Assembly (NCBI GenBank): GCA_002269645.1
Contig: NIVC01001473.1
Location: forward strand, 1 to 36,998
Length of the DNA stretch: 36,998 nt
From: Macrostomum lignano
Lineage: Eukaryota
Direction of reading: 5' to 3'
Within the stretch, counting starts at the first letter, position 1. Each line of letters opens with the position of its first letter. The notes beneath the pieces were generated by a model that searched no databases, was not told where the DNA came from, and saw only the letters and a list, made by a program, of their open reading frames with translations. The translations under genes were made by a program, and so were the position numbers. Below are positions 11,430-36,998 of the stretch, in pieces.

Positions 11430-11590
11430 CTAGCAATCTATAGTGCCCCCCTTCAGGGCGCCCAATGAGCAAGGGAAAAAAATTATTTATGTGAATCCTT
11501 TTTGCTTTGATACCTAAGCAATTCCCCCCTTAAGCCTTGACATCTTAGCGATTCCCCCCTTAAGCCTTGACATCTTAGCATATAATATGA
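11430..11590 (-). mobile_element. Short non-autonomous Helitron-like element with internal 30-nt duplication
   Basis: Minus strand a|TCATATTATA... 5' end at 11590. 3' end ...gccctgaaggggggcactatagattgCTAG|t at 11430. A/T target, no TSD. Confidence 0.55.
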
Positions 11591-14568
11591 TGAAAAAGTT
11601 AAAAATAATCCATGAATTCAGTACTAAAGCTGCTGCACTTCTTTTACCGAATATTATTGATAAGAACCAAAGCTTGTACGAGCGTAGTAGCTATAAGGCA
11701 AACCACCGACTGCTTCGTGTAGCAGATGCATGGATTCTGCTTCTTCTTACATCAGAGAGAGAAACTTATTATATACTATAGAGTGCCTGTTGGTCTCTGG
11801 GGAATGCGAATTAAAGGAAGCGATGTGGAATTCTGCAGAATTAAGTGATCTTAATCTCTTTGATGCCATCAAACTCGATGCTCTCTCTTTTTCCTCTTTC
11901 AGTCAGTCGGACTGAAGAATGGTTGGAACCGGCGGCCGCAGCTGTGCAGGCCCTTAGAATTGAAAGCCGAGCGCTTAGAGTTCGATCGAGAGAAAAAACT
12001 TCAACCAAAGCAGCTCGACAATTTCTGACCAAAAAAATTGGACGCATTCAGGCGGCTTCTGTTGTTCGCCAATATTTTTTCTAGGATGCGTTTGCATGTT
12101 CGAGGGACAGAAGAGAGCGAAGCGGACGAGCTGCAAAATGGAAAACATTTGGTTTCGGACGAAACGGAACGGCAAAATTAAAGAGAATGGATTGGACTAA
12201 AAACGTACTTTAGTTCGAATTCCTGTTACGTATAATCTCCAAAGTGACAGTTCACTCCATCAGCCCAGCGCAGCTGGATCTGTTTTGAAATTAAAGTACA
12301 AAAAATCTGACGGTTGTTTTAAATTCCAGACACGGACCACTGGAAGGTACGTCTACTTTAGTAGTCCTTGATTCCAGACAGAGTTTAGTTTAACAAAAGT
12401 AGGTTACTTTTTTAAAAGGACACTGGGATTAGCTTAGTTTGTAAAAAAACGGTCTGGCTAGCTTTTCATTCATATTTGTTCTAGTTTCTAAAACCGTTGC
12501 AAGCAAATGAAGTTTTCAAACGCAATACACGCATACATGAGCTGCATTAAGTACTGTAAGTAAGTAGTGCAGAGTTTTCATTCTATTTAAGAAGTCAAGC
12601 ATTCAGCTCAAGACGCATGTGTGCTTAGTTAGATGTTTTCACTAACCAAGCAGCGATCCAGGAAGCGCAATGTGTGAGCAATGGAACACGTACCATGGAA
12701 CGCCAATCCTGTAAACTGTCTGGTGGCCTCTCCAGCTCCATTTGCAAGGCGGGCATGAATTGTCTGAATTTAATTACTTCTCTGTGTCTTGAATTCAATG
12801 CTCTGCCTGTGGCGTCGCCGACCAAAGACGGTGTTGTAACCATAGACTAAAGTAGACGCATTGGTTGAGTATGTATGAATGGCAGTGTCTTAAAATGAAG
12901 TTAGTCAAAAACATTGGTGCACTCATAGCCATTCTCTACTACATCATTGTCGCAAACTTTCACTTCGACCCAATACCAATTTCAAAACGTTATTGTTTAA
13001 CACTTGCGATTGCCATAGACAACGAATCAATTGGAGCATGTTAATAACAAGTGTGTTTATGTTATATGTAACAGTTTAAAAGCATAGAGAAAAAATCCTT
13101 CATGTTTAAGAGTAGCATTACTATGAGTAGTAGTTATAACTGAAAAGCCAATAAATTACCCTCAACTAGTTACTGACGCCAGCAGATTCAAATTGTTACT
13201 TGTTGAAGGTAAACGTGCGGTTTTCGAAATGGCAATTTTCAAACATTCGTGAAACTTCGCTTCGGATATTTCTAACTGAAAAATAAAAAAGCTCCTCTTC
13301 TTGACTCAGAGTCACTTCACTTGTTTGCTCTTCGACTGCTCTGGTGTTCAAGGCTACAGTTTTTGCACACGATGGCTGACCTTCTTCCCCGATTGGTCGC
13401 CTTAAGGCAGCGCTTATAGCAGTCGATGCTCGACAAACAACGCGATTTATTTTTCTTGAGAGGTACTTTTGGCCAGTAATGCACATAATACTGCTGGCTG
13501 GGGTCGTGACCTGTTTCATGGAGGGCAGCAATGCGAGTCCTCTATATGACAAAGCCACATGCACAATTACATTGTAACACGATTCACCGTGCATTTAAAC
13601 GCTAAAAGCGTGCTTAAAAGGCTCGTGATCGCGTATTGACCAGAGTAATTTAATGCTCTAGAAATTTATCGTGATTAAAGTTTTGCTCAATAGTCGCGTC
13701 TTTCTTGCTGAAATTTCTGGAATTTGAAGCCCTGAATAATGAGTGCACAGTGTAGGAGCAGTGTAAAACTGCAATTACTATGGACAAGCCCCTCAGTTAC
13801 TAAGCTGCTGTAACTAGGTAACTATAGGTGCAAGATCCCATCAATTGGTGCTTGATGAAGCACCTTTCAAAAGGTTAATATCCGCATCTCATCGGACAAA
13901 TCTCTCAGACCAACTAAACTATTGAAGTGACGCGCCTTTGAATAGAGAAATGATGTTAAAAGAAAGGCGCAGAATCACATTTTTGTTTTAATCTAACAAC
14001 AGAAAACAGATATATTCCTAAGCAAGCAACATTCCTTTATTTTCTTCGATATGTGTTCATCAACCAACTCGCGTCGAAGCGCATAATAACAACGAAAGAG
14101 ACATTAACACCAAACACTGCAGAAAGATTTTCTAAAAAAACAGTTTACTGGAACGGAAGATTACACATAAGAGAAGATTAACTAATACAGTTGAAATTAA
14201 GCTGGGTTTTATTAAAGTATTTTCGTACAACATTCGCAAAAGCGACCGATCAAGTAAACGTATTGCTTTTTTCATACAACAATTTAAAAAAGACTCAGTA
14301 GTACTACTAAAACAGGTCCTAGTAGTTCACGAAGAATATGCTCTGTATTTGTTGTGATCAATTATGCTTATGAGAATGGCATACAACATGTATTAGGCAG
14401 TAATAATTGAATCTAATATATTGTTACACAGGAAACAGACGACAATGCAGTGTAAAACATGATGAGTAAAAATAATCGTGCTTAATCGTATATTTACTAA
14501 GCATTTCTTAGTGATTATAAACGTTTATAAACGCATGGTCAGTTAGTTTTTTTAATGAAATAATGTTT

Positions 14569-14617
14569 CTATGAATAGCCATTAACTGCGCTCTTTCTTT
14601 TTCGCCCCAACTTCGAT
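14569..14617 (-). CDS. unc-104: Kinesin last coding exon: (R)[15 protein letters not shown]
   Basis: Acceptor aatttcag|A TCG AAG, phase 2. Resembles the KIF1A C-terminus RSKLSRR. TAG at 14571-14569. Confidence 0.85.
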
Positions 14618-15330
14618 CTGAAATTGAGATGTTGGATAAAATTATTATTAATTAGTAACAGCATCTCAGTAAAGTCTAAACAAAGCCCAATAAATCGATG
14701 AAGGTTTAGTCACTCAACCAGGCACAATCGACCTCACCTCATCTGACCAGCCATCAGCGGATTAAACGCGTAGAGCCAGTCGTGGACCTCCTTGTCCTCT
14801 AGCATTGCATCAGGTAGCCACGATGCGGCGTGATCACCGTAAAGACGTTCTTAGCCCGCAGCATGGCCTGCTGTTCTTCGCTGTACTCAATCTGTGCGGT
14901 AGCTAAGTTAATAAAGCCCCGTTCAACAGGATCTCGCTCGTTCTGGTAGATGTAGAGAAACGGCCTCCTGACAACGACCCAGCGGCGTACCCAGCCTCCC
15001 GACTTCTCCTCCAGAAAGTTCAAGTAACCGCGCCGAGACACCTGTGGCGAGGCGCGAATCTCGTCGCACTGACCAATGAGGCTGCCTGGTCGCAAGCTGT
15101 CCAGCGGATTCTGACTGGCTGACTCGCCAGCGCCTCCGCTAGCCGAGCTCATCACGCTCTCCATGGTCGGCGATTTCTGCATCATGTTAGCCAGCCCACC
15201 GCTGCCACCACCGAAGCTGGTGAGGGAGGCGAACGATGCTGACGGCGAATGACGCATCTGCGGACGCCATATTTCGGACATGCCGCTGGCGTAAGATATT
15301 GCCGAGGGTAGGGCCGCACGGATCTGTGGT

Positions 15331-15390
<60 letters not shown>

Positions 15391-18300
15391 GGAGCTGGCG
15401 GTGCTTGCGGCTGCTGCGGCAGCGTTGGCTGCAACTGAGTTGTCGGAGTACTAGCAGCTGGCAGTAGCTGGGTTCGCCCACTACTCAAAAGTTGCAGACA
15501 CTTTCGAATCAAGAGCTGCTCGCGGCTGAAGTTTTGTTTAACCTAAAGAGAGTCAGTAGCAGAGTAAGTAGGTGCGTATTTTCAGCATTAATCTTTAACC
15601 TTACTTTTCCATTGCCTACTACGAAAACGTCAAACCACCAAATCCTTGAAACGTCACAGTACTTACTTCATCGGGAATGTCGTCCAGCACTGAATAGCTG
15701 GGACTCCGGGCCAACCCGCAACCGCCGCTGCCCAGCTCGCCGCCTCCAACGCTGACTCCACTGGACGAAATGTCGTCTCCCGCGCCCCGGCTGCCGCCGC
15801 TGCCGCAGCCGCCTCAGCGTCCATCGTAGTCAGAGCATCAATTCGACCATCTTGTGCCAGCTTCTCCCTCAGCTGCAGTGTGTGGCGCGCCTTCTCTACC
15901 AGCTCCAGCCGGACCAGTCGCTCCAACTCCCATTGATGCTCGACAATCAAGGAGTCCGACCTGGGCCGCCAGCCTTTGAGATTCTCCTCGCCGCGAACGT
16001 AGGCAAAGTTGGTGCTACCACCACCGCCGCCGCTGCCTCCGCTCGCTGTGCTGGCGTCCAGAAGGCGCCGAGAACGACGGGTCGCTGCGGATGTTGCATG
16101 ATCAGGTCGTCGATACTGTAGATCAGCCCAAGTATCAATGGTGATTTTTTACCTACCTTTTTCAGAAACCTGATAGATTTGCAGGTCGTACACAGTGGTG
16201 ACCCGGTTCACATCTTGAGGCCGGCACCAGCTGCCAAACAGTTGCTTGATTGATCTGTCGGTGTTTAATTGAACGAACTCAGTCACTTCGAGTGACTATA
16301 TAACCACTGTATAATCCGATTTGCAAGTGCGAATCAATAAAAGTTTTAGGCCAGCACACGAAAATAGAGTAATCATTGCATGTAAATGTATTCTGGTTAA
16401 ATTTTATTTGGTATCTAACAGGTACTTATGCGACATCAGTTTGTTATTTATAATCGTTTCCATTATAGAAAAAGTACGTGTGAAACAACAATCGAGTTTT
16501 ATTTAAAATACAACACGAATACTAAATATAGTGCTGTCCTTAAAACTTATAAATTGTAATTCTATGTACACTGAGTACTGATGTTTTTCAGAATGACTGA
16601 AACACACTGAAAGCAGCTTATGCAATGTGCGCGCGTGTTAATTTCAGATAGTTTAGATAGAAACGGGACGTGAACACTTCAAAACAGCAATTGTCGAGCA
16701 AGGGAGCAACGAGTATATAAGCATTTCAGAATGACGGCTTCAAGATTTAATCGCTTTACAGACGGAGCGATAACAGAGAAAGCTCAAGATTTTATGATGG
16801 AAAGATAATAATTTTTCCACTCGATAGCTGCTTGATGCGAGCTAAGACGGTATGCTCAAGGATTTGCTCATCTACGAAAATAAAAAAGCAAAGCGCAGTT
16901 GAAAAAAGGAAAAAAACTCTAAGAACAGAATGCATTCTAAATAAAAGAAAAATATACTCAAAAATTAGTGCTCTCTGACTTAGCATCTTTTCTGTTAATT
17001 ACATCAAAGCAGCCTTAATTTTTTAGGTTATTTTGTTAGCTACTTTGTTTAACGCCATTATGACTGATTGCTACTCACAGTGAGACATTTTGCGTGATGC
17101 TGCCAATGTTAAAAAAAAGGAGGGTAATAAAAGTGACAGAGTATTTAGCTAATATTGAGTTTGGTAAATCGCACTTGAAAGATAGATAAATTAATCTATA
17201 AATCTAAGAACTAAAAAAGTAAAAAACGCTCTTTTGCTTTTTAGAAGAGCTGGACTTCTGTACTTCAAATAAAAGCAACTAGACAGCACTTTAACATAAA
17301 AAATAGCAAAATATTTTCTTTCTACAACCTGTTATTGTTCTGTTATTAACCTGAGGCGCTAACAAATAAAGTGTGGCATCATTGCAACTACAAAGATTCA
17401 GTTATGTCGGTTTTCAGTCATGGACAGCCGAATTTTAGAAGCTTCAGATTTCCAGGTTTTCAGTTTTAGAGGTCTTTATTATAAACAAAATATAAAAACA
17501 TTGAAAGAGATATTAATATATTCAAGACTTAAGACTCAGGAAGTATGAGTAAAAGACGTAGAATGAGGCCAACAAAAATGTGATTTTAAAATTTGACATG
17601 GAAATGGAATTATAGTCATCTAACGGTCTGTCTGACTGATTGGGTTTGTGTTCTGTCTGAGTTTCTGCATTTTCTGATAGCTCTATCAGCAGTAGTTAAA
17701 ATCAAACTTGAGCTACAACAACTGTATGCCAGAAACTTCTTAACATTTACACACGTAGCAGCGTACGAAGTACTTCATTGGCTTACCTGGGCACCGTGAG
17801 CTTTGTATCCCTAGGATAGATGACCAACGCCAGGTCCTTGGTGACACACACGGGCTGACAGCATCCCTCAATGTCCACGTAGCAGGTAACAGTCAGGTAG
17901 ACTCGCTCGCCCGTAGGCGTGACAGTATTTAGAAGTGGACTCTCGTGCAGCGAGCTGTCCCAAGACGCTTCGAACCGAGTGTAGACTCGCTCGTCACCTT
18001 CCAAGCCGCTACTAGCACCCGACTGACTGGACGACAGATTGCCAGCCTGAATCAGGCTCAACGATTGAACTCGCGACTGCATCTCACCGGACGCGTCCAG
18101 GCCCGAGTCGAACGAGTCGCGAACCCGACCGACCACGAGTTCGCGAGCTTCGCGTACTGCAGCCTCCGGCGGTCCGGGCTCGTGGGCCAGAGTGACGCCC
18201 AGTCTGCGCTGCAGACCGTGACGCAGCAGGAAGACACCCTGGCAGGGAGCGTCTTCCGAATGGTCGACAGCAACAGGCGTGTAGTCTCCGGTTGGCGCCA

Positions 18301-24300: not shown

Positions 24301-27300
24301 CCGAGCATAGAAGACATCATGCTCTGGCTCATTATCACCTGCTCCTGCAGAGACTGAATTGTCGCCTCGTAGTCCTGTATGATTAGACGGGTTAACTTTA
24401 TTGATTCGGTAGTTACTGTGTATGTTAACCAAGATGGACCAGACTGCCAGGCTTTATTGGTGGATGTTGTGTTCACCAAGATAGACTAGACTGCCAGGCT
24501 TTATTGGTGGATGTTGTGTTCACCAACATAGACCAGACTGCCAGGCTTTATTGGTGGATGTTGTGTTCACCAAGATAGACTAGACTGCCAGGCTTTATTG
24601 GTGGATGTTGTGTTCACCAAGATAGACTAGACTGCCAGGCTTTATTGGTGGATGTTGTGTTCACCAAGATAGACCAGACTGCCAGGCTTTATTGGTGGAT
24701 GTTGTGTTCACCAAGATAGACCAGACTGCCAGGCTTTATTGGTGGATGTTGTGTTCACCAAGATAGACCAGACTGCCAGGCTTTATTGGTGGATGTTGTG
24801 TTCTTAGACCAGACTGCCAGGCTTTATTGGTGGATGTTGTGTTCACCAAGATAAACCAGACTGCCAGGCTTTATTGGTGGATGTTGTGTTCACTAAGATA
24901 GACCAGACTGCAAGGCTTTATTTGGTGGATGTTGTGTTCACCAAGATAGACCAGACTGTGAGGCTTTATTGGTGGATGTTGTGTTCACCAAGATAGACCA
25001 GACTGTGAGGCTTTATTGGTGGATGTTGTGTTTACCCAGATTGACTACTAGTGAGTAAAAAGTTTAGTTTACTACGGGTTAGAACAGAATGGAACCTTCG
25101 ATGCCAAGGCACTCATTCGTGTTTTACCTTAAAGACAGCTTACCCTTCTCTGCTTCTCAAACTCTCGATCGGCGAGCACTTTGTCTCGCTTATACTGCTC
25201 TTCAAGTTGCAGCAGTCGCAGCTCCATCTCTTTGCGCAAGTCGACGCCTTGCTTTTCTAGTAACTCGGCCATCGCGTACTGCCAGTCCACTCCTTCCGCT
25301 ATGTAATTATGGGCAGATTTTTTACGAATAAATGGTTAATGTCGACATAATTGATTAATTCACGGCTTGCAATCGCAAATAAAACATTTACCTGTCGGCG
25401 TGTCAACTTTCGGCTCCCTCGCCTGCAACGGGTCGGTGAATCGGAACACGTGACTTTTGCCCAGAATCACTCGCGAACCGGACTTCAGTTGCGTTGTGGA
25501 TTGGGAAACTTTCTTGCCGTTCACGTAGCACTCAGCTGAGCCAATCGGGGTCAGGCTGACGGATCCTGTCGCAGGAAAAAGACGGATTGCGGTTTATGTA
25601 GATTTACCAAAACCGGCATAGTTATTTTTTCTCGGGACTTTCCTCCTGAAGAAACAATTGATATTGTTTCTTAAGGAGTTTCCACGATTGATATTACTTC
25701 TCGGTGATTTCGCACGGTTGACGTTACTTCTCGGTGATTTCCCACGATTGACATTACTTCTCGGTGATTTCCCACGATTGACGTTACTTCTCGGTGATTT
25801 CCCACGATTGACATTACTTCTCGGTGATTTCCCACGATTGACGTTACTTCTCGGTGATTTCCCACGATTGACGTTACTTCTCGGTGATTTCCCACGATTG
25901 ACATTACTTCTCAGTGATTTCCCCGACTGGTACTTCTCGGTGATCTCCCACGATTGACATTACTTCTCAGTGATTTCCCACGATTTACATTACTTCTCGG
26001 TGATTTCCCCGACTGGTACTTCTCGGTGATCTCCCACGATTGACAATAATTCTCGTTCGTTTTCTACGATTTTGACTATTTCTACCCCTATTCAAATATG
26101 TTAAACGCAGTTCTCACCGTTGCGTAACTCGAACACGCAATGCTCGGGCTGTATGCAGTCGCCGCTGAGCTGAACATCCTGAGGCACGGTAGCTTCGGGT
26201 CGACCGACTCTGCAAAAATTGCCAAATTTTGTTTAGCTACAAACAACAAGAAGAGGGGTAGCTGGGAGCGGGTAAAAAGGCGATTAAATCTTTACTTAGT
26301 CTCGCCCTCCTTTAGATAGTAGATCAGACACTCGGACATTAACGGGTCCTCGTTCAGATTGACCAGATGCGGCGTACGTTTCGGTGAGAACACTGCCAAT
26401 GAGCCGCCGTCGTTCATGACAGCAAGGCCCATTTCAGCCAGCTGATGCTCCCTGAAGTTCATAGGGTTCATTGCCGGGATATAGCCAGGGGGGCTGCGGA
26501 GCTTCGACTAATTTTGACGCCCCCTAGCCCACTGATTTGGCGCCTTTGATGTCCTTTCTCAGCAGGTGTTGCGCCCTCACACAGGTTTGACGCCCCTGGG
26601 TGCTGGCGCCCAGTGGTGCTGGCGCCCCTTGGTGCTGGCGCCCCTTGGTGCTGGCGCCCCTTGGTGCTGGCGCCCCTTGGTGCTGGCGCCCCTTGGTGCT
26701 GGCGCCCCTTGGTGCTGGCGCCCCTTGGTGCTGGCGCCCCTTGGTGCTGGCGCCCCTTGGTGCTGGCGCCCCTTGGTGCTGGCGCCCCTTGGTGCTGGCG
26801 CCCCTTGGTGCTGGCGCCCTTGGTGCTGGCGCCCCTTGGTGCTGGCGCCCCTTGGTGCTGGCGCCCCTTGGTGCTGGCGCCCCTTGGTGCTGGCGCCCCT
26901 TGGTGCTGGCGCCCCTTGGTGCTGGCGCCCCTTGGTGCTGGCGCCCCTTGGTGCTGGCGCCCCTTGGTGCTGGCGCCCCTTGGTGCTGGCGCCCCTTGGT
27001 GCTGGCGCCCCTTGGTGCTGGCGCCCCTTGGTGCTGGCGCCCCTTGGTGCTGGCGCCCCTTGGTGCTGGCGCCCCTTGGTGCTGGCGCCCCTTGGTGCTG
27101 GCGCCCCTTGGTGCTGGCGCCCCTTGGTGCTGGCGCCCCTTGGTGCTGGCGCCCCTTGGTGCTGGCGCCCCTTGGTGCTGGCGCCCCTTGGTGCTGGCGC
27201 CCCTTGGTGCTGGCGCCCCTTGGTGCTGGCGCCCCTTGGTGCTGGCGCCCCTTGGTGCTGGCGCCCCTTGGTGCTGGCGCCCCTTGGTGCTGGCGCCCCT

Positions 27301-30300
27301 TGGTGCTGGCGCCCCTTGGTGCTGGCGCCCCTTGGTGCTGGCGCTTCCCAAAACACTACGAGCGTAATCTCTAGAGACCAACTTAACCCAGGAACCTTTT
27401 GATTCAAAAAAAATCTTGAGTACTATCAATAGACATTCATCTCTCAAGACTGGCGCCCCTTTACAGGATCGATAATATTGTTTGGGGACTTTCTTGACAC
27501 ATTCAAAAATTATATATCAAGTTACTGTTAAAAACTGTTATTAAGATGACAGACGTATTTATGTACAAACCTCTCCTGTCTAATTGTCTCAGTCTTCTTC
27601 AGTTTCTCCTCCCAGGTTTCGTTGAGTTCGGCAATCAACTTTTCCGAAGTGCGCAGCTTTTCGATGGCGTCTTCGCCACCGCCGCCGCCGCCGCCGCCGC
27701 CGCCGCTGACGCTGCCAGACTTTGGCATCTTCGATGGTGCACCACTGGCTGCTGCTTTCGACATCGTCGGCTGATGTTTTGTTCCACCCGTAAGCGACTG
27801 CGGCGGCTGCGGAGGCGACTGTTGATTGGGCTTGGTAAGCTGTTCAGTGAGCTCGATGCCCTCCAGTTTGATGATGTCTCTGAGCTTCTGAACCTCCTCT
27901 TTGAGTTCGCGGATCAATCGGGCGTTCGGATCCTCGTTGATGACCGCTTTGCAGACGATCTGCTTGGCCCGATCGGCGTATCGAAGGGTGCTCAGCGTCT
28001 CGTCGTAGTTGATGTCAGCTGGACTCAGGGCAGCGATCATGGCCGTCTTTGAGTTGCCGCCTATAGGAGTTTTCCAGGGTCGATATTTTTGCTTGGTGAC
28101 TTTCCGTGATTCATATTGTTGCTTGGGGACTTTACAGGATCGATATTTTTGCTTGGGACTTTCCAGCATCGATATTATTGTTTGGGGACTTAAAGGATCG
28201 ATATTGTTGCTTGGGGACTTTACAGATCGATATTGTTGCTTGGGGACTTTACAGATCGATATTGTTGCTTGGGGACTTTACAGATCGATATTGTTGCTTG
28301 GGGACTTTACAGGATCGATATTTTTGCTTGGGACTTTCCAGCATCGATATTATTGTTTGGGGACTTAAAGGATCGATATTGTTGCTTGGGGACTTTACAG
28401 ATCGATATTGTTGCTTGGGGACTTTACAGATCGATATTGTTGCTTGGGGACTTTCCAGGAGTGATATTGTTGCTTGGGGACTTTACAGATCGATATTGTT
28501 GCTTGGGGACTTTCCAGGAGTGATATTGTTGCTTGGGGACTTTACAGATCGATATTGTCGCTTGGGGACTTTCCAGGAGTGATATTGTTGCTTGGGGACT
28601 TTACAGATCGATATTGTTGCTTGGGGACTTTCCAGGAGTGATATTGTTGCTTGGGGACTTTACAGATCGATATTGTTGCTTGGGGTCTTTCCAGGATCGA
28701 TATTGTTGCTTGGCGACTTTACAGATCGATATTGTTGCTTGGAGACTTTACAGATCGATATTGTTGCTTGGGGACTTTCCAGGAGCGATATTGTTGCTTG
28801 GGGACTTTACAGATCGATACTGTTGCTTGGGGACTTTCCAGGAGCGATATTGTTGCTTGGGGACTTTACAGATCGATACTGTTGCTTGGGGACTTTCCAG
28901 GAGCGATATTGTTGCTTGGGACTTTCCAGAATCGATATTGTTGTTTGGGGACTTAAAGGATCGATATTGTTGCTTGGGGACTTTCCAGGAGTGATATTGT
29001 TGCTTGGGGACTTTACAGATCGATATTGTTGCTTGGGGTCTTTCCAGGATCGATATTGTTGCTTGGCGACTTTACAGATCGATATTGTTGCTTGGAGACT
29101 TTCCAGGGTCGATAATATAGCCTGGAGACTTTACAGGATCGATATTATAGCTTGGGGACTTTCCAGGAGCGATATTGTTGCTTGGGGACTTTACAGATCG
29201 ATACTGTTGCTTGGGGACTTTCCAGGAGCGATATTGTTGCTTGGGACTTTCCAGAATCGATATTGTTGTTTGGGGACTTAAAGGATCGATATTGCTGCTT
29301 GGGGACTTTCCAGGAGTGATATTGTTGCTTGGGGACTTTACAGATCGATATTGTTGCTTGGGGACTTTCCAGGAGTGATATTGTTTCTTGGGGACTTTAC
29401 AGATCGATATTGTTGCTTGGGGTCTTTCCAGGAACGATATTGTTGCTTGGCGACTTTACAGATCGATATTGTTGCTTGGCGAGTTTACAGATCGATATTG
29501 TTGCTTGGCGAGTTTACAGATCGATATTAGTTGGGGACTTTCCAGGATCGATATTATTGTTTGGGGACTTTACAGGATCGATATTGTTGCTTGGGGACTT
29601 TACAGATCGATATTGTTGCTTGGGGACTTTCCAGGGTCGATAATATAGCCTGGAGACTTTACAGGATCGATATTATTGCTTGGGGTCTTTCCAGGATCGA
29701 TATTGTTGCTTGGCGACTTTACAGATCGATATTGTTGCTTGGGGACTTTACAGATCGATATTGTTGCTTGGGGACTTTCCAGGGTCGATAATATAGCCTG
29801 GAGACTTTACAGGATCGATATTATTGCTTGGGGTCTTTCCAGGATCGATATTGTTGCTTGGCGACTTTACAGATCGATATTGTTGCTTGGCGAGTTTACA
29901 GATCGATATTAGTTGGGGACTTTCCAGGATCGATATTATTGCTTGGGGACTTTCCAGGATCGATATTGTTGCTTGGGGACTTTCCAGGGTCGATATTGTT
30001 GCTTGGGGACTTTCCAGGGTCGATGATATAGCTTGGAGACTTTACAGGAAGGATGACAGAGTTTTTGAATTGTCTAATATATTGATTTCGAGATTTTGCA
30101 AACAGGATACCATTGTGCGAATCGATGATCTGCTAGCAGGAAAATTTTTTTCACGATCCATGTTGTTATTAATTGAATCAGGGGCTTTTAAAAGAGGTGA
30201 TTTTCCGAATATCCTCGATTGGAATTAATGGGAGAAATGCTTAATCTGATGATTTTTTGTGTATTCTCACTTTATACACTTCCAGCCTGAAAAATATTTT

Positions 30301-33300
30301 CAACTTTTTCAAGTTGAAACTTTTTCAAACTTTTTCAAAACTTTTTCAAGCAAAGCAAACACGTCTTTAAAGCAAACACGTCCAGTTGTGACTACTGTTT
30401 CAGTAGCATACAGTACCACGAATCCACAAACATTCCTATCAGATTTTTGAATTTTTTCAACTCGAAATGATAGTGAATGAAGCACAATGAAGCTATTAAT
30501 AGAATATAAAGGCTTTCAGTAGCTAACCCTCCCTTGGAGCTCGAATGCCTTTACATTAGTCACTGCATGAACCACACCCAGGCCTCACCCAGTGGACTCA
30601 ATTCCAGGGCAGACTCAAACCAACCGCACTCTACGCTATTACATACCCAGATTCTCGCGCAGAAGCCAAGTTAGCACTGAGTCACGGTACGGAATGAACT
30701 GGGCTATTTTCTTGCTCTTTCGGCGATCCATCTGCAAGAGGTTTTGTTATTTTGTAGGAGTTTAAGATTTTATTCTAGTTAGGAATAAAGCTCGTACTAC
30801 TTGGAAGCTGTACCCTTCTGAATATCAACTTGTTTTCTATTTAAACGGGTATTTGAACCGATAGTACAAAGATATGGTCTTTGATGGGATAGAGGCAATT
30901 CCAGATCCTCTATTTCAGGGCAACCACCGCCACCCACCCTCCCAGGTCCTCAGCTGCAGCCACACTCCCAGATCCTCAGTTGCTGGGCCACCCACTCTCC
31001 AGATCCTCTGCTTCTGGGCCACAGCAGTCACCTTCCCAGATCCTCAGCTGCTGGGTCACCGCAGTCACCCTCCCAGATCCTCAGCTGCTGGGTCACCGCA
31101 GTCACTCACCCTCCCAGATCCTCTGCTTCTGGGCCACTGCAGTCACCCTCCAGATCCTCTGCTTCTGGGCCACTGCAGTCACCCTCCCAGATCCTCTGCT
31201 TCTGGGCCACTGCAGTCACCCTCCCAGATCCTCAGCTGCTGGGCCAGCGCTGTAACCCTCTCAGATGACAGTTCGAACTCCTTCGACAATCAAAAAAGTT
31301 ACTCAGTGGGTCTCTCTGCTCTTTCTATCGATAGATGACTCAACCATGATCGGAGATTTCGATTCCAAATACAGCAACTACTACTGTTATCGAATATTCA
31401 TCCGCTGTCACGAGACGCTTGCAGACTCGATGACTCACCTCGTTGCTCTGCGGGATTAAGGGAAAGGGGGGGAATAGAAAAAGTGTAGATTTATTGCATC
31501 AGGTTAGTAACTGCATGGCCTAAAACAAACGACTTCTGCATCGAATTATGGCATAAATTAGCAAGGCGTTGACCCCTGGAGGTCTGGACTTCCGCGGTTG
31601 AGTACTGCTCTTTCTATTTTCCTTTCCTATTTAGTTTTCGTCTTGTTACTCTGAGTCTCTTTCTGGTTTTGAGTCTTCTGCTTTTTTTGCTCTCTAGCAG
31701 TCTCGAGGACCGCGGGACAGAGAGGGAAATTAAAGGTGCGGTGACTCATACAAGATAAAATGAATGTGTTCGTTAATCATCGAGCTATGATTAATGTACT
31801 CCGGTATTTCAATTCTCACGTATCAGTTTTATCAAACGGACTGATTCACAAGTCATCAAAGCGGTCACCATTAAACTTCTTTCAATCCATCCGTTGATGA
31901 TTAAGTTAAATAATCAGACAGAAACCGTCTTTTAGAACGATTCCAGGCTGTTTAATTTTTAATTTTAATAAATATTTAATAAGATTTTTGTATCCTACTT
32001 TGTATTGTATTGTATTATATCGATCTAAAAATAGATGAACACGTGAGGCTTTGCAAGCTTCAATTGGAAAAGATGAAATTCGACGAGAGTTAGCTATTTT
32101 GGTGTCCTGGACTAACCTCCCTTAGGTAAAGTCGATGTCAGTGACGCACCTTCATATCCAATGACCTTAGTCTCTCTGCCTTTCTCACCTTTTTCAAAGC
32201 CCTCCCGTTGCGCAAAGGCATAAAGCAAACAGGGGCGGAGGCGCTGCACTACAAATTCAAATTGCATTTCTATTTTCTACACTGGCCAGGTCCAGCTATC
32301 TCAAAACCAGCCCTATCTTACTTTCTCAGCCGCGTGTTACTAAAATTAGAAACACAACCGGACCGACCGACAGCCCCAACCTCCCTGGGCGACGCCTCTC
32401 CTCCCCCTCTGCCCAGACAGCCAACCCTGTCCTTTGCTCAGCGGCGCAATATGGACAGGAAGGAGAGAAAAGGGTGGAGCTTGCATAGGACTGGCTGAGG
32501 CACGAGTACTGAGCCCCACACACACCCAACACTGCTCTTCCCCTCGAACAACGTTAAAAAACTGGGCGTCGCAACCAAAAATCGACTAAAACTAACCGGC
32601 CTATATATTAACAACAGACTCCATCGGTCCCAAAAGAATTTTCTCCAATTCAACTGGACTATGCCTGCCTGCATGAGCATCTGCGTTGCAGCCAGTGGCC
32701 AGTTTCAGGCGTCGCAGCAGGTTTCCCCGTCCGACAGATTTTCGTCCAACGCCGTCAGCCCTAGGCGACCAGCGTTGATGCTGGTCGACAATCGGAGCCA
32801 GCCGGCCGCCAACGATCCGGAGGTCCCGATCGGCAATTCATCTTCGACTTCTTCGGATTTCGCCGCGGCAGGCTGTTGCGTCATCGGCGGCCGAGTTCGT
32901 CTTCGTCCTGAAGCTGCCTACGTTCAACTTGGCGACGTTGACGCCCCAGGAGCCCGGTGCGTGCGCATTGTGCACATCGGCGACTCGTTCTACCGAAAGC
33001 GTCGGGGTGGAACTGCTGTTGAACTGGCGGGTCGGATACCAGACGGAGACGTGCTGGTGCACTCCGGCGGCGACTTCGGCTCCGACGGTGGCTTCAGCAG
33101 AGACAATGGTAACACCAGGGCGAGCCTCAGAGACCGTTTTGGCAGCATTCTCAGTCCACTGCTGAGACGGCGCAAGCTGCACCAGCTGCGCGACCTGCTG
33201 TCGGCGCTGCCGCACCGGCACAAAATCTTGGTGCCCGCTTGCGACACAAACGTCGGCCAGAGAGATGTTCAACAGCTGCTTGGCTCTGCTTGCCACTGCT

Positions 33301-35650
33301 TGCGGAATTCCTCCGTGACTCTGGAAGGTGTCACCTTCTACGGGATGTCGTCGGCAAAACCAACCGAGGATGAACTGTCAGCGGAACTGGAGTCAGTCGA
33401 CGTGCTGGTGTCGCACTGTCCACCGCGGGACCAGGAGCTTGCCCGCGAAGTCTTTCAGCGAATCCGGTAAGTACTTCTATGAAAGACTTCTATGTACCGT
33501 TTTGGTTTGACCAGTTATCTAATGCACGGAAATGCCCTAATTCTTTATTCCAGTCCAAAGGCCCTCCTGCAAGGGCATTCACCAGTCACAGATCTTCACA
33601 GCGAGACGCAATGGCAGGACGGCGTTCTGCTCTGCAACGACCACCAACTAGCTAACAGGGACAAAGAGGCCACGGCTGTTGGGAAAAGAGAATTCAACAA
33701 GCCGGTAGTTATCGATTTTTACACCTGTCGACCAATGAGCGGCATCAGCCAGGAGTACTCGGAGGTGATGCGGTCAGTTGGCTGCAAGCAGAATCGCTCG
33801 AAAAAGCAATCAAAGCACTCTGAATGCAACCTGTTGTAATTCAGAAATGCTCTTCCGAATGCAACTCGAAAGAGAAGAACAGGATTTCTCCTCTCTAATT
33901 GATTCATAACTCACGAGCTTTTACACAGTGCTATATGGTATATCATGCTTAAGTATACTTTCGACCGCTTATGACTTCATGTGCAGGCAGGCACCGCTTC
34001 GAAAAATCAGTCAGCCCATTAACCATCCACCATCAGCTACAAACTGCTGGCTTTTGTGCATTTTGTTGCGGTCAGCTTGTAATTGGCCGACAATCAAACA
34101 AAAAATTTCTTTGTGCCTTGTGCAAGTATCTGAGTTCGGATTTTTAAACAGTCTCGTCCATATGATCAACTATTAAAATAACTTCGGTCGTTTTAAATCC
34201 CATTGTTATCTGTAACATTTTTCGTAGAAATTTCCCTTTTGCCAATCGGAGCAGTGTGTATTCGTCACGTGACTTGTTTTTGTCTTATTCAAAACACTTC
34301 ATTTTAACAAAAAACGTTCGGTAAACGCACAAAACAAGACAAAACCGAACGATTTGCTTTGACATTGAGAACGAGACTGGCGCTTTCTCTTCTTCATCAT
34401 GTGCGTAATTTTTGCCTCGTTTCATCGACGTGCTTTGTTTTAAACAATTCGCCCTTCGTATTGAAATTATTTGTTAATTTGTTTGTTAGTTTCTAATCTT
34501 GCACCATAGTATTTTGCTCCTCAACCTACTGTTTTGAAGATAGTGTTTCGCAATTAGCACTGATTTATTAACTTATCAACCCCCAACAGTCCAGCAGGCG
34601 ATGCTTTGATTTGAATTGCTTCTGATTTCCAATCAAATTCCATTCATAAATAATAATTATTGATTTTTTTCGCCTCCGTTTGACGCGAGCAATTTAAGAA
34701 AAATATAATTTACAAAATCATTTACAAAAAACAGTTCAGTGATTCAGTGAATCGTATTTCAATATTTAGAGGATTTCACGACGACTCATTCAATGCTTAA
34801 CTGTCTAATTGAGTAATTATAGACCATTTTAATATGTTGACTTTTGCTGTCATAATTTCAGGCACTTGTAGTTTAAACCCTTAGCAATCAATATGTTCAA
34901 AGATGAATCTTCATAAAAGTACATAAAAGTACATGTGCCTTTGGGAATGGGAAATCAATCCATGAATTTTATCGGGGGAGGTCAACGGACCCCGGCCATG
35001 ACCCCTAGAAGATCCACCAACTGTCCGCAAGTTTATTTATAAATGAAGATGATTCAAAACTGTATATCCTATATACTAAATCCTATATACTAAAAATGGT
35101 CTGTCGGTATCTATCTGGGTAGGTACGAGTATGCGATCGATTTTAGCAAAAATAGCTCAACCGATTTACTTCAAAATTGCACTGTTCGATCAAAAATTTT
35201 CACTACAAATGATGTCCTGACGCCCCAAATTTCTCGGGAGGGTCACCTGACCTCCACCTTTAAATTTCCCGGGGAGGGTCCCCTGATCCCCAACTTTCTT
35301 TCTCGGGGAGGGTCACCTGACCCCTAACTTTCTCGGGAGGGTCCCCTTACCCCCAACTTTCTCGGGATTTTCAGGAGGGTCGCCTGACCCCTTCCGACCA
35401 CTCTGGACTCACTACTTATCCATTAAGAAGTTTATTTTCAGTAGAGGAAACGACTGTTGAATGGCTAGATAATCAAACAAAAAGAAGCAAGCTCAAAGAT
35501 GCGCACACACATCGGCGAGGCCGCTAATAACTTTTCCCAACGTTGTCAGACTCTTGTTGATGTTGGCGCCCTCTTTGAGACGTTTGCCCTGGCGCCAGTC
35601 GAGTCCGCTCTCTCGCTGCCGGCCAGGTCCACCAGGCTGATTTTGCTCAC
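14569..35650 (-). CDS. unc-104: Kinesin-3 (unc-104/KIF1A-B type) gene span, 5'-truncated; exons listed separately
   Basis: Spliced translation gives [65 protein letters not shown], an FHA domain, [33 protein letters not shown] and a C-terminal PH domain, all characteristic of KIF1A/UNC-104. All junctions are GT-AG with matching phases once the frameshifts are allowed for. Confidence 0.97.
14738..15525 (-). CDS. unc-104: Kinesin exon: [13 protein letters not shown], poly-Q linker and PH domain; 1-nt frameshift at about 14802
   Basis: Acceptor cttcag|C CGC GAG; donor AG|gtgagg. PH motifs [25 protein letters not shown], and after the shift [22 protein letters not shown]. Confidence 0.92.
15333..15389 (-). 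repeat. Pure (CAG)19 coding repeat giving Q19
   Basis: 57 nt of uninterrupted ctg on +, in frame within the kinesin exon. Confidence 0.97.
15605..15615 (-). CDS. unc-104: Candidate 11-nt kinesin micro-exon (GCA ATG GAA AA = AME + N)
   Basis: ttttcgtagtag|GCAATGGAAAA|gtaagg. Phase 0 in and phase 2 out, which fits the frameshift-corrected upstream exon and the phase-2 downstream exon. Confidence 0.55.
15667..16084 (-). CDS. unc-104: Kinesin exon: [10 protein letters not shown]...[28 protein letters not shown]...; probable frameshift at about 15787
   Basis: Conserved KIF1A stalk motif. Acceptor ccgcag|CG chosen for phase (less certain). Donor GAA|gtaagt. Confidence 0.85.
16157..16254 (-). CDS. 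unc-104: Kinesin exon: (R)[32 protein letters not shown]
   Basis: cgacag|A TCA ... AAA G|gtaggt. Resembles KIF1A RSIRNLFG...NRVTGVYEL. Confidence 0.92.
17787..18340 (-). CDS. unc-104: Kinesin exon: [20 protein letters not shown]...[16 protein letters not shown]...[12 protein letters not shown]
   Basis: ttttag|ACT ... AG|gtaagc. Matches the conserved KIF1A stalk region. Confidence 0.95.
18774..19482 (-). mobile_element. Non-autonomous Helitron-like element containing a ~19-20-nt minisatellite (atagcaagcatccccca, about 19045-19477)
   Basis: Minus strand a|TCTAGTATT... at 19482. 3' end ccgccccgaaggggggcactagattgGTAG|t at 18774. Same hairpin as at 6813 and 11430. Confidence 0.65.
19541..20459 (-). 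CDS. unc-104: Kinesin exon: (R)[36 protein letters not shown]...FRVTVLQA...[17 protein letters not shown]...PLH
   Basis: 919-nt open exon, actttcag|A ... CAT|gtaagg. KIF1-type motifs. Confidence 0.95.
20542..20688 (-). CDS. unc-104: Kinesin exon: (R)[10 protein letters not shown]...[15 protein letters not shown]
   Basis: gtttcag|A CAG ... CG|gtaagt. Diagnostic KIF1 motif. Confidence 0.96.
21021..21255 (+). mobile_element. tRNA-derived SINE with CORE-like domain
   Basis: A-box-like TAGTCTAGTGA (21029) and B-box GGTTCGATTT (21073). These are followed by tgtgtacttgagcaagacacttaac...cttcagttcacccagctgtaaaatgag, resembling the CORE consensus TGTGACCTTGGGCAAGTCACTTAAC...CTCAGTTTCCTCATCTGTAAAATGG. 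3' end approximate. Confidence 0.75.
21312..21478 (-). CDS. unc-104: Kinesin exon: [22 protein letters not shown]...[24 protein letters not shown](R)
   Basis: atctttcag|GTT ... AG|gtaggt. KIF1-conserved. Confidence 0.96.
22203..22559. mobile_element. MITE with 14-nt TIRs ACTAGATGGGCCAC (copy 1)
   Basis: TIRs at 22203-22216 and 22546-22559. The inverted match extends outward to 22186 and 22575 (cacagatactagaata). Confidence 0.8.
23370..23712. mobile_element. Same MITE family, inverted orientation (copy 2)
   Basis: TIRs actagataggccac / gtggcccatctagt. The body is the reverse complement of copy 1 (for example ggaattccaggctaaagctgccatgtacatttcagtgg). Confidence 0.8.
24074..24153 (-). CDS. unc-104: Kinesin exon: (A)[26 protein letters not shown]
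   Basis: ccttgcag|CG ... AGG|gtaaga. Resembles KIF1A [25 protein letters not shown]. Confidence 0.95.
24251..24374 (-). CDS. unc-104: Kinesin exon: [41 protein letters not shown]
   Basis: catacag|GAC ... G|gtttgt. Phases match both neighbours. Confidence 0.9.
24429..25045. repeat. ~45-nt intronic minisatellite (caagatagaccagactgccaggctttattggtggatgttgtgttcac)
   Basis: About 13 near-identical units filling the intron. Confidence 0.96.
25144..25298 (-). CDS. unc-104: Kinesin exon: (A)[51 protein letters not shown] (CC2)
   Basis: tacatag|CG ... AGG|gtaagc. Resembles KIF1A [22 protein letters not shown]. Confidence 0.95.
25392..25565 (-). CDS. unc-104: Kinesin exon: FHA C-terminal part [20 protein letters not shown]...[20 protein letters not shown]
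   Basis: gcgacag|GA ... G|gtaaat. FHA motif. Confidence 0.96.
25659..26050. repeat. 30-nt intronic minisatellite (cccacgattgacattacttctcggtgattt)
   Basis: About 12 tandem units. Related to the 28066-30048 array. Confidence 0.95.
26118..26209 (-). CDS. unc-104: Kinesin exon: FHA part [30 protein letters not shown]
   Basis: tttttgcag|A GTC ... G|gtgaga. Confidence 0.96.
26296..26451 (-). CDS. unc-104: Kinesin exon: (R)[11 protein letters not shown]...[31 protein letters not shown](K)
   Basis: aacttcag|G GAG ... AA|gtaaag. [16 protein letters not shown] is diagnostic for kinesin-3. Confidence 0.97.
26590..27344. repeat. 16-nt GC-rich intronic minisatellite (ccccttggtgctggcg), about 47 units
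   Basis: Almost perfectly homogeneous. One unit lacks a C at about 26817. Confidence 0.98.
27571..28060 (-). CDS. unc-104: Kinesin exon: end of motor, neck coil, low-complexity insert (poly-Gly) and CC1
   Basis: cctatag|GC GGC AAC TCA AAG ([35 protein letters not shown]) ... AG|gtttgt. Confidence 0.97.
28066..30048. repeat. 28-30-nt intronic satellite (ttacagatcgatattgttgcttggggact / ttccaggagtgatattg... variants)
   Basis: About 2 kb of tandem units starting 5 nt from the exon boundary. Confidence 0.97.
30647..30731 (-). CDS. unc-104: Kinesin exon: [28 protein letters not shown](G) (loop 12/K-loop)
   Basis: ctcttgcag|ATG ... CTG G|gtatgt. Confidence 0.97.
30899..31262. repeat. ~37-nt minisatellite (cccagatcctctgcttctgggccactgcagtcaccct)
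   Basis: About 9 degenerate units. Each carries a cccag...ctggg inverted pair. Confidence 0.9.
31734..32151. mobile_element. Possible degenerate TIR element (Kolobok-like ends)
   Basis: TTAA|AGGTGCGGTGAC at the left and GTGACGCACCT|TCAT at the right. Imperfect TIR and an imperfect TTAA-like TSD. Confidence 0.35.
32602..32611 (+). promoter_or_regulatory. Possible TATA box of the nested gene
   Basis: TATATATTAA about 50 nt upstream of ATG 32661. Position only, no expression data. Confidence 0.3.
32661..33466 (+). CDS. Nested MPPED1/2-like (calcineurin-like metallophosphoesterase) gene, exon 1
   Basis: [49 protein letters not shown] and [10 protein letters not shown] parallel MPPED2 RFVCISDTH, PYGDILLHTGDF, LGNLPYEYKIVI, LQDSEVTVKGFRIYG and IDILMTHGPP. 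Donor CG|gtaagt. Start codon could also be 32673. Confidence 0.85.
33554..33839 (+). CDS. Nested MPPED-like gene, exon 2: (R)PKALLQGH...NKPVVIDF...[17 protein letters not shown]
   Basis: ttctttattccag|T CCA, 87-nt intron. RPKALLQGH resembles RPKLHVFG.IH and NKPVVIDF resembles NPPIIFDL. Spliced product is 363 aa. Confidence 0.85.
35067..35400 (+). mobile_element. Helitron/HINE (DINE-1-like) non-autonomous element with internal ~35-nt subrepeats
   Basis: a|TCCTATATACTAAA 5' end (duplicated at 35081), then tagctcaaccgatttacttcaaaattg, and tandem ttctcgggagggtcacctgacccc units at 35220-35395. 3' end not defined. Confidence 0.5.
35511..35650 (-). CDS. unc-104: Kinesin exon (switch II): [20 protein letters not shown]-[frameshift][25 protein letters not shown]
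   Basis: gcaaatag|GTG ... GAT|gtgtgt. One base is missing at about 35590; adding it gives 47 codons and the right phase. Confidence 0.93.
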
Positions 35651-35800: not shown

Positions 35801-35876
35801 TGTCTGTCTGTCTGTCTGTGTGTCTGTCTGTCTGTCTGTCTGTCTGTGTGTCTGTCTGTCTGTCTGTCTGTGTGGC

Positions 35877-35909
<33 letters not shown>

Positions 35910-35910
35910 T

Positions 35911-35944
<34 letters not shown>
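35801..35944. repeat. (CTGT)n microsatellite
   Basis: About 36 units with a few gtgt variants. Confidence 0.97.
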
Positions 35945-36598: not shown

Positions 36599-36998
36599 GG
36601 CGCCGCAGGCACTCATTTTAGCGCCGCAGGCAGTCATTTTAGCGCCGCAGGCACTCATTTTAGCGCCGCATTAGGCACTCATTTTAGCGCCGCATTCAGG
36701 CACTCATTTTAGCGCCGCATTCAGGCACTCATTTTAGCGCCGCATTCAGGCACTCATTGTAGCGCCGCAGGCACTCATTTTAGCGCAGCATTCAGGCACT
36801 CATTTTAGCGCCGCAGGCACTCATTTTAGCGCAGCATTCAGGCACTCATTTTTGCGCCGCAGGCACTCATTTTAGCGCAGCATTCAGGCACTCATTTTAG
36901 CGCCGCAGGCACTCATTTTAGCGCAGCATTCAGGCACTCATTTAGCGCCGCAGGCACTCATTTTAGCGCAGCATTCAGGCACTCATTTTAGCGCCGCA
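36599..36998. repeat. 21-26-nt minisatellite (ggcactcattttagcgccgca +/- ttca), runs off the window
   Basis: Tandem units to the end of the window. Confidence 0.96.

Follow-up and report, generated by a model that had tools for sequence, protein, structure and literature searches.

What does a metallophosphoesterase-like protein still do when half of the key positions of its active site are gone? This question is raised by a gene of the flatworm Macrostomum lignano, which lies inside an intron of a kinesin gene and on the opposite strand. We analysed contig NIVC01001473.1 of the M. lignano assembly GCA_002269645.1 over its whole length of 36,998 bp, and this stretch is called the window below. 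An earlier sequence-only reading of this DNA had placed an intact two-exon gene for 363 amino acids at positions 32661-33839 and had taken its product for a prenylated, catalytically dead relative of MPPED1 and MPPED2. The gene model was confirmed by its open reading frame and splicing (ATG at 32661, TAA at 33837-33839, two exons on the forward strand) and by the full-length identity of the protein (100%) to the GenBank entries PAA66236.1 and PAA67577.1 (BOX15_Mlig021091g1 and g2). The spliced coding sequence comprises 1092 nt and the protein ends with CNLL. Mlig021091 is labelled 'hypothetical protein' in GenBank and 'Metallophos domain-containing protein' in UniRef. Both the gene model and the family are already known, and no description of a degenerate MPPED paralogue with a CaaX tail was found in the searched literature. 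We consider it probable that Mlig021091 encodes a transcribed, vertically inherited and selectively constrained pseudoenzyme, which would work as a binding protein tethered to membranes through its CaaX tail rather than as an enzyme.

The family assignment was obtained from sequence profiles and from the predicted fold. An exhaustive phmmer search over 1.84 billion representatives yielded 21 matches, the top one being another M. lignano protein, Mlig006851 (P0005, 237 amino acids), with an E-value of 1.5e-13. Mlig006851 carries the complete metallophosphoesterase signature, passes PF00149 at 48.7 bits and is about 33-43% identical to Mlig021091. A hidden Markov model (HMM) of intact family members scored Mlig021091 at 135 bits. 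Moreover, when a profile of Mlig021091 and its phmmer matches was compared with the PDB, rat MPPED2 alone was matched (3RL4, 3RL3 and 3RL5; E-values from 4.5e-49 to 1.8e-46). A pairwise BLAST alignment to MPPED2 had turned out to be partly misaligned and was replaced by profile and multiple alignments. The relatives carry names such as 'UPF0046 protein C25E10.12-like', 'K07C11.7-like' and 'metallophosphoesterase domain-containing protein 1-like'.

Two AlphaFold2 models were built from 22 and 104 aligned sequences. Their mean predicted local distance difference test (pLDDT) values were 67.6 and 69.2, with values of 84-96 in the beta-sandwich core and values below 50 for residues 1 to ~80, residues 143-149 and the extreme C-terminus. 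For both models the top Foldseek match was MPPED2 (3RL3, E-values 1.5e-8 and 1.3e-9, probability 1.00), with 3RL4 and 3RL5 likewise among the top matches. All remaining matches were metallophosphoesterase folds, namely aq_1956, MJ0936, Vps29, LpxH, purple acid phosphatase and Mre11. Profiles and models support placing Mlig021091 in the MPPED1/MPPED2 (UPF0046) family, from which it has diverged strongly while keeping the predicted calcineurin-like alpha/beta sandwich, and the family proposed from the fold motifs alone has held up.

Within this fold the active site has changed. Table 1 lists the motifs as read from three multiple alignments made independently of one another: A1, A6 (which includes the MPPED2 chain) and A7 (104 sequences). 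Compared with about 130 intact relatives, four of the eight key positions are lost: DxH is without its His, GNH without both Asn and His, and GHxH without its second His. Asp108, the bridging Asp138, His252 and His277 are kept. The sequence-only reading had described these changes as DSF, ACD(T) and GHSP and had counted about three of seven metal ligands as lost, with GD and SH retained. Aligning rat MPPED2 and about 100 relatives with the protein bore out the residues, and the count is correct as well. The Asp and His positions of motif I read D-H in more than 120 intact relatives. When 168 retrieved proteins were aligned to the family HMM, 61 showed the full pattern D-H-D-N-H-H-H-H and another 55, which are truncated predictions, fitted it as far as they were covered, departures being limited to a handful of sequences. 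Almost all sampled non-flatworm relatives keep each of the eight key positions that they cover.

From the structures of Rv0805 and MPPED2 we take the ligands of metal 1 to be both motif-I residues (Asp and His), the bridging Asp of motif II and the second motif-V His. Metal 2 shares the bridging Asp and is further bound by the motif-III Asn, the motif-IV His and the first motif-V His. On this assignment both metal-1-specific histidines as well as the non-ligand catalytic His would be lost and the metal-2 Asn would be replaced by Cys. The dinuclear metal centre of Mlig021091 appears dismantled, and phosphodiester hydrolysis is most likely impossible. Besides, intact relatives show at least 85% conservation at 52 positions, of which 23 are altered in the protein, and the changes near the pocket include S107G, T109S, G193A, D216N and P230S/W231S. 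These changes mark a long phase of relaxed or redirected selection that preceded the present constraint.

That constraint was deduced from the copies of the gene in the assembly. The GenBank annotation of Mlig_3_7 represents a genome-guided transcriptome (StringTie/TACO plus de novo assembly) without ab initio models, from which novel transcripts below 0.5 reads per kilobase per million (RPKM) were dropped (PMC5730564). The locus occurs four times in the assembly, and two of these copies, the window and L001, are identical across the gene. In the other two, L003 and L004 (g3 and g4, protein P0004), 11 and 13 sites of the 1179-bp gene depart from the window; four of these differences fall into the 87-bp intron, where they leave the splice sites unchanged. 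The 7 (L003) and 9 (L004) coding differences consist of 6-8 synonymous changes and a single non-synonymous one (R170Q), which corresponds to ratios of non-synonymous to synonymous substitution rates (dN/dS, Nei-Gojobori) of 0.054 and 0.040 against the window. Under neutrality, at most one non-synonymous change among 9 would be expected with a binomial probability of 9.5e-5. The 1.5-kb flanks of the gene show 1-2.4% mismatches plus indels between copies, and none of the four has lost its start, its stop or a splice site. A ratio near 1 had been named beforehand as the sign of a pseudogene; the low values found between the duplicated copies, in a gene taken from an annotation based on RNA sequencing, instead point to selective constraint and disfavour a decaying pseudogene.

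The intron of Mlig021091 provides information on its descent. Genes of Hymenolepis (L005) and Schistosoma (L006) contain a phase-2 intron at the identical site, with the borders CA/gtaagt...cag/A CCC and AA/gtgagt...tag/G CCT, respectively, and many shortened gene predictions of the family stop at this shared site, which precedes the Pro in R-[IV]-[RQK]-P. The shared intron indicates that the gene was vertically inherited and is no retrocopy. A processed pseudogene or retrocopy was also considered and was rejected in view of the ancestral intron, the intact frame in four of four copies and the dN/dS of 0.04-0.05. The paralogue Mlig006851 lies at 9226-9918 of L007 (contig NIVC01002442.1) and lacks the phase-2 intron that is common to Mlig021091 and the Hymenolepis and Schistosoma genes; as its residues 7-237 are encoded in a single exon, the intron has been lost there. 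Mlig006851 is not nested and sits between an unannotated gene for 400 amino acids and a histone deacetylase gene.

Outside the core, Mlig021091 carries several additions. The N-terminal ~85 residues are predicted to be disordered and have no counterpart in most relatives; Ser accounts for ~15% of the first 95 residues and a CC pair is found at 72-73. RKRRGG forms a 6-residue insertion following motif I, and the loop following motif II is ~20 residues longer than in the family and contains RRRK (RQRK in g3/g4). The segment following F-Y-G is without the P-W of the family and without ~15 residues. At the C-terminus a polybasic stretch precedes the CaaX box (Table 1), which has Cys at position -4, an aliphatic a2 residue and an X of a kind that FTase or GGTase-I recognises, in a classic polybasic-CaaL order. 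By the established CaaX rules, Leu at the X position would direct the protein to geranylgeranyltransferase I (GGTase-I).

These extras had been listed by the sequence-only reading as not familiar from MPPED proteins. The N-extension, the CC pair, both basic inserts and the polybasic CaaX tail are indeed present. The CaaX box is not peculiar to this protein: Cys at position -4 occurs in 20 of the 87 retrieved family members that reach past motif V, against a Cys background of 2%. Around 17 CaaX-like cases remain once near-identical sequences are collapsed. Among the family tails, those of intact members included, are CTLM, CLVM, CTIQ, CVVL, CCIS, CCVS, CTIL, CLIC, CIIV and CAIL, the CVVL tail belonging to a member from a foraminifer (Reticulomyxa), and most members with a CaaX box have Lys/Arg 2-6 residues before the Cys. 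Cys at -4 was recorded in P0006, P0048, P0062, P0084, P0085, P0089, P0119, P0132, P0133, P0138, P0143 and P0153 as well as in others. The CaaX tail is a recurrent and probably old feature in part of the family, and this recurrence makes the tail of Mlig021091 more credible as a functional element, and less novel. Neither the recurrence of CaaX boxes nor prenylation in the MPPED/UPF0046 family was found described in the searched literature.

We propose that prenylation of the GGTase-I type would place a geranylgeranyl group on Cys360 of CNLL. The polybasic stretch together with the prenyl anchor would then hold the domain at the cytoplasmic face of acidic membranes, where the remnant pocket, the basic loops and the disordered Ser-rich N-terminus may bind a ligand or partner proteins. 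The pocket is suggested as a binding site by the fact that MPPED2 binds 5'-nucleotides tightly. Similar tails are known from Rap1 and the Rho family, in which Cys-a-a-Leu likewise stands after a Lys/Arg-rich stretch; such polybasic-CaaL tails direct geranylgeranylation and binding to acidic membranes. Only the logic of the tail is common to these proteins and Mlig021091, their domains being unrelated.

Among the known systems, MPPED1/2 (239AB/239FB), which are class III cyclic nucleotide phosphodiesterase-like proteins, and dMpped (CG16717) of Drosophila come closest. Mlig021091 belongs to the same family, finds its best fold match there and has the motifs I-V in the same order; like MPPED1/2 it is without the Cys-rich insert of the C25E10.12/K07C11.7-like branch. 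In contrast to MPPED1/2 it has an extra 85-residue disordered N-terminus, two basic loop inserts and the CaaX tail, and it falls below Pfam detection. Wild-type MPPED2 lacks the second His of GHxH by nature, with Gly252 in its place, and in agreement with this the G252H mutant chain of MPPED2 was scored highest by our profile. Moonlighting has also been suggested for MPPED2. MPPED1/2 and dMpped keep D-x-H and G-N-H, whereas Mlig021091 has lost the His of the former, the Asn and His of the latter and also the second GHxH His. MPPED1/2 and dMpped are measurably active metal-dependent phosphodiesterases, and dMpped has been suggested to serve as a scaffold or to moonlight (PMC10547211).

The retromer subunit Vps29, which was among the fold matches with E-values of only 2e-3 to 1e-2, resembles Mlig021091 in that the catalytic site of its metallophosphoesterase fold is incomplete, and this inactive fold is used as a scaffold that binds proteins. 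Vps29 is thereby the best-known model for how Mlig021091 may work. However, Vps29 has ~180 amino acids, is not prenylated, belongs to another branch of the superfamily and has no specific sequence relationship to Mlig021091.

Several points speak against a constrained, membrane-tethered pseudoenzyme of the MPPED family. The sequence-only reading had suggested a check with PF00149, which failed: a Pfam search with the single sequence gave no match to this or any other entry at E-values up to 10, and a search of all PDB chains with the single sequence gave none either. Mlig021091 is too divergent for routine domain annotation and its family membership therefore rests on the profile and fold evidence, where the TM-scores of the fold matches were moderate (0.49-0.51 when normalised to MPPED2, with a root-mean-square deviation of 6-7 Å). 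A search for orthologues in other species, by which the conservation of CNLL and the ligand losses was to be judged, found none among 15 billion proteins, and nothing nearer than the M. lignano paralogue Mlig006851 came up in either a word-indexed or an exhaustive search. Expression values under the gene ID of Mlig021091 were not found in the searched full-text literature and M. lignano supplements. The selection test compares very recent duplicates and draws on no more than 7-9 substitutions, and the prenylation is a prediction from sequence rules only. Furthermore, Cys194, Asp195, Asp108, Asp138, His252 and His277 could hold one metal, which would leave room for a residual or altered chemistry.

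Carried further, this last point would make Mlig021091 still an enzyme, with a mononuclear Zn/Fe site formed by Asp138, Cys194, His252 and His277, perhaps together with Asp108 and Asp195. The reaction at this site would be hydrolysis or a different one, and its substrate might be a membrane lipid or a nucleotide. All four metal-2 positions bear metal-capable side chains, and a specific chemistry would fit the strong purifying selection; we nevertheless regard this explanation as improbable. The His of GNH[DE], which stabilises the transition state or the leaving group across the superfamily, is absent, both metal-1 histidines are gone, and several of the 23 altered conserved positions surround the pocket. 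In MPPED2, the natural loss of the second GHxH His alone reportedly already lowers activity, and we know of no mononuclear member of the metallophosphoesterase fold with this ligand set. It is more improbable still that the gene is a young, non-functional or decaying duplicate, whose low dN/dS would merely reflect too little time since the genome duplication of M. lignano. The very long branch with its altered conserved positions, the lack of an orthologue in other species and of a Pfam match, and the few substitutions in the selection test would suit such a duplicate. Yet a frame of 363 codons with start, stop and both splice sites has stayed intact in four copies, and 8 of 9 coding differences are synonymous at a divergence of 1-5% in intron and flanks. 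How little of the sequence is shared with Mlig006851 shows that the split from the intact relatives is old; even so, the frame has acquired neither a stop nor a frameshift, and the models of the core are still confident.

A further alternative arises from the parasitic flatworms. A profile search revealed degenerate MPPED-like proteins of 400-760 amino acids in all sampled cestodes (Hymenolepis, Rodentolepis, Anoplocephala, Echinococcus, Taenia, Hydatigera and Mesocestoides) and trematodes (Schistosoma, Trichobilharzia, Opisthorchis, Fasciolopsis and Echinostoma). We refer to these strongly conserved proteins (P0008, P0025, P0032-P0047 and P0049-P0052) as the neodermatan clade. Examples are KAM3188212.1 of Hymenolepis, a 'metallophosphoesterase domain containing protein' of E. 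multilocularis and 'UPF0046-like' of Schistosoma; its two loci studied here are those of Hymenolepis weldensis (L005, gene 10001-16283) and Schistosoma mekongi (L006, gene 10001-38171). The proteins share the invariant motifs VHISDTRG, HSGDF, G-C-W-[DE], [ST]HMPA and LCGHDF[TA] and are interrupted by long insertions of low complexity, and no Pfam domain is on record for them. Complete cestode models end with CCLQ, CRLQ or CSLQ, and trematode models are without a CaaX box. No description of this clade was found in the searched literature. The same four positions are lost in it as in Mlig021091, the Asn being likewise replaced by Cys, and both have loop insertions, N-extensions and the phase-2 intron. 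The clade differs from Mlig021091 in protein length, in its own invariant motifs and in that its genes are not nested: no kinesin matches were present within 10 kb on either side of the Hymenolepis and Schistosoma genes.

It is conceivable, although rather unlikely, that Mlig021091 is an orthologue of this clade with its DTR/GCW/HMPA/GHDF signature, and that both go back to a single origin at the base of Rhabditophora. The identical four losses and the Asn-to-Cys replacement would then be inherited, and both proteins also carry extra residues in the loop that follows GDF and again before the last strand, possess an N-extension, lack the Cys-rich insert and agree in intron position and phase; the CaaX ends of the cestode proteins fit as well. 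However, the shared intron and the missing insert are family-wide characters, and of the signature VHISDTRG/GCW[DE]/[ST]HMPA/LCGHDF only the Cys of GCW is found in Mlig021091. In neighbour-joining trees, which are a crude method for sequences as divergent as these, 0 of 300 bootstrap replicates joined Mlig021091 to the clade, with or without the motif columns, whereas the clade itself was recovered in 300 of 300; Mlig021091 paired with Mlig006851 in 7-16% of the replicates and was otherwise a floating long branch. The neodermatan HMM scored Mlig021091 at 78 bits and the intact-family HMM at 135 bits, a ratio no better than that of the intact Mlig006851 (126 vs 194 bits), and the top phmmer match was Mlig006851 and no neodermatan protein. 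Of the 52 family-conserved positions, 11 are altered in the clade vs 23 in Mlig021091. Moreover, a third, unrelated degenerate sequence, P0022 (233 amino acids; DTI, GEKD, SHQPP and GHVN), has lost the same four positions, so that this loss can arise convergently. Independent degeneration of the three lineages along a preferred path is favoured by these comparisons.

In all three degenerate lineages the metal-1 histidines and the catalytic His have gone, and the metal-2 positions are still occupied by ligand-competent residues (Asp, then Cys, Cys or Glu, then His and His). The Asn position has become Cys in Mlig021091 and the neodermatans and Glu in P0022 and is never a non-ligand residue, and four residues are retained throughout, namely the Asp of motif I, that of motif II, the motif-IV His and the first motif-V His, which are further points in favour of a remaining enzyme. 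The retained positions suggest a mononuclear site or a structural role. A more far-reaching reading would be that the MPPED fold has repeatedly been turned into a membrane-tethered, mononuclear Asp-Cys(or Glu)-His-His module with a prenyl tail that senses metals or ligands, in Mlig021091, in the sampled parasitic-flatworm clade and in at least one further lineage; we consider this doubtful. For Mlig021091 itself, a catalytically inactive binding protein at the membrane remains our preferred explanation.

The nesting of Mlig021091 antisense to a kinesin gene, as claimed by the sequence-only reading for the intron 30732-35510, proved exact by the flanking exons and by domain matches. Translated kinesin exons further downstream match the Kinesin, Kinesin_assoc, FHA, KIF1B, DUF3694 and PH domains, which is the architecture of KIF1A/UNC-104 (kinesin-3). 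The arrangement is common to all four M. lignano copies (the window, L001, L003 and L004). A search for transposon-like terminal or inverted repeats around the nested gene found none. A TATATAT sequence is located 59-53 nt 5' of the ATG of the nested gene (Table 1).

In the window, one C of a CCC run is missing at ~35592 in the kinesin motor exon at 35511-35650 on the reverse strand, which shifts the frame between ...ADSTGA and GKRLKEGAN; the run is intact in L001, L003 and L004. The window and L001 show 2 mismatches and 35 gap openings over 14.4 kb. Since the differences between them are almost all indels, the frameshift is most likely an error of the long-read assembly and no real lesion. 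The kinesin introns are full of minisatellites with periods of 47, 30, 16, 29/59, 37, ~34, 4 (TGTC) and 25/46 nt, located at 24423-25045, 25682-26055, 26591-27344, 28071-30049, 30929-31266, 35216-35367, 35801-35944 and 36606-36998. The 29/59-nt array alone takes up 2 kb, long spurious open reading frames result from the minisatellites on both strands, and the end of the contig falls inside such an array. Further long tandem-repeat tracts were found towards the low-coordinate end of the contig at 1-2430 and 7860-9610, where they translate as repetitive pseudo-reading frames (SRSRF/GRDSQ-type and LSIY-type); they lie downstream of the kinesin exon for the PH domain (~14800-15540, reverse strand).

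Table 1. Features of Mlig021091 and of its kinesin host intron, with positions in the window.
Feature	Position	Strand	Remarks
Exon 1, codons 1-268 and 2 nt of codon 269	32661-33466	+	Ser-rich N-extension (residues ~1-85), motifs I-IV
Intron, phase 2, GTAAGT...TTATTCCAG	33467-33553	+	Splits the Arg269 codon directly before Pro270
Exon 2, last nt of codon 269 to codon 363 and TAA	33554-33839	+	Open reading frame and splice sites
TATA-like TATATAT, possible core promoter of the nested gene	32602-32608	+	Pattern match only; weak
Motif I, VHIG-D108-S109-F110 (family VHIS-D-T-H)	32982-32990 (D-S-F)	+	Asp kept, metal-1 His lost
Motif II, H-S-G-G-D138-F (family HSGDF)	33060-33077	+	Bridging Asp kept, one-Gly insertion before it
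Motif III, A193-C194-D195-T196 (family G-N-H-[DE])	33237-33248	+	Metal-2 Asn replaced by Cys, catalytic His lost
Motif IV, His252 of SHCPP (family T-H-x-P-P)	33414-33416	+	Kept; column invariant in A1, A3, A6 and A7
Motif V, G276-H277-S278-P279 (family G-H-x-H)	33573-33584	+	First His kept, second replaced by Pro
Polybasic stretch K347-K356, upstream of CaaX	33786-33815	+	Translation
CaaX box C360-N-L-L	33825-33836	+	Identical in 4 of 4 genomic copies
Kinesin-3 (KIF1A/UNC-104-type) host intron containing the nested gene	30732-35510	-	Flanking kinesin exons
Kinesin motor exon, upstream of the host intron	35511-35650	-	Ends ...KVISGLAD, then gtgtgt
Kinesin exon, downstream of the host intron	30647-30731	-	ttgcag, then ATGGATCGC, 29 residues

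If our reading of Mlig021091 is correct, the MPPED branch joins the short list of pseudoenzymes with a metallophosphoesterase fold, of which Vps29 is the classic example, and a lipid-anchored tail would be a recurrent and so far undescribed trait of MPPED-like proteins in invertebrates and protists. For genome annotation, it illustrates that such proteins escape the Pfam threshold. Of greatest value as a by-product are the degenerate clade found parasite-wide and the repeated, patterned dismantling of the metal-1 site; the parallel loss of four residues across cestodes and trematodes points to a protein that is present parasite-wide. M. lignano is free-living, and transgenesis and RNA interference are established in it. 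Mlig021091 may thus offer a tractable free-living proxy for a function that would also be present in tapeworms and flukes. MPPED1/2 are brain-expressed, weak enzymes from the WAGR region for which a scaffold role has been put forward. Non-catalytic roles of MPPED1/2 would gain support from a relative that is inactive by nature, tethered to membranes and kept under purifying selection.

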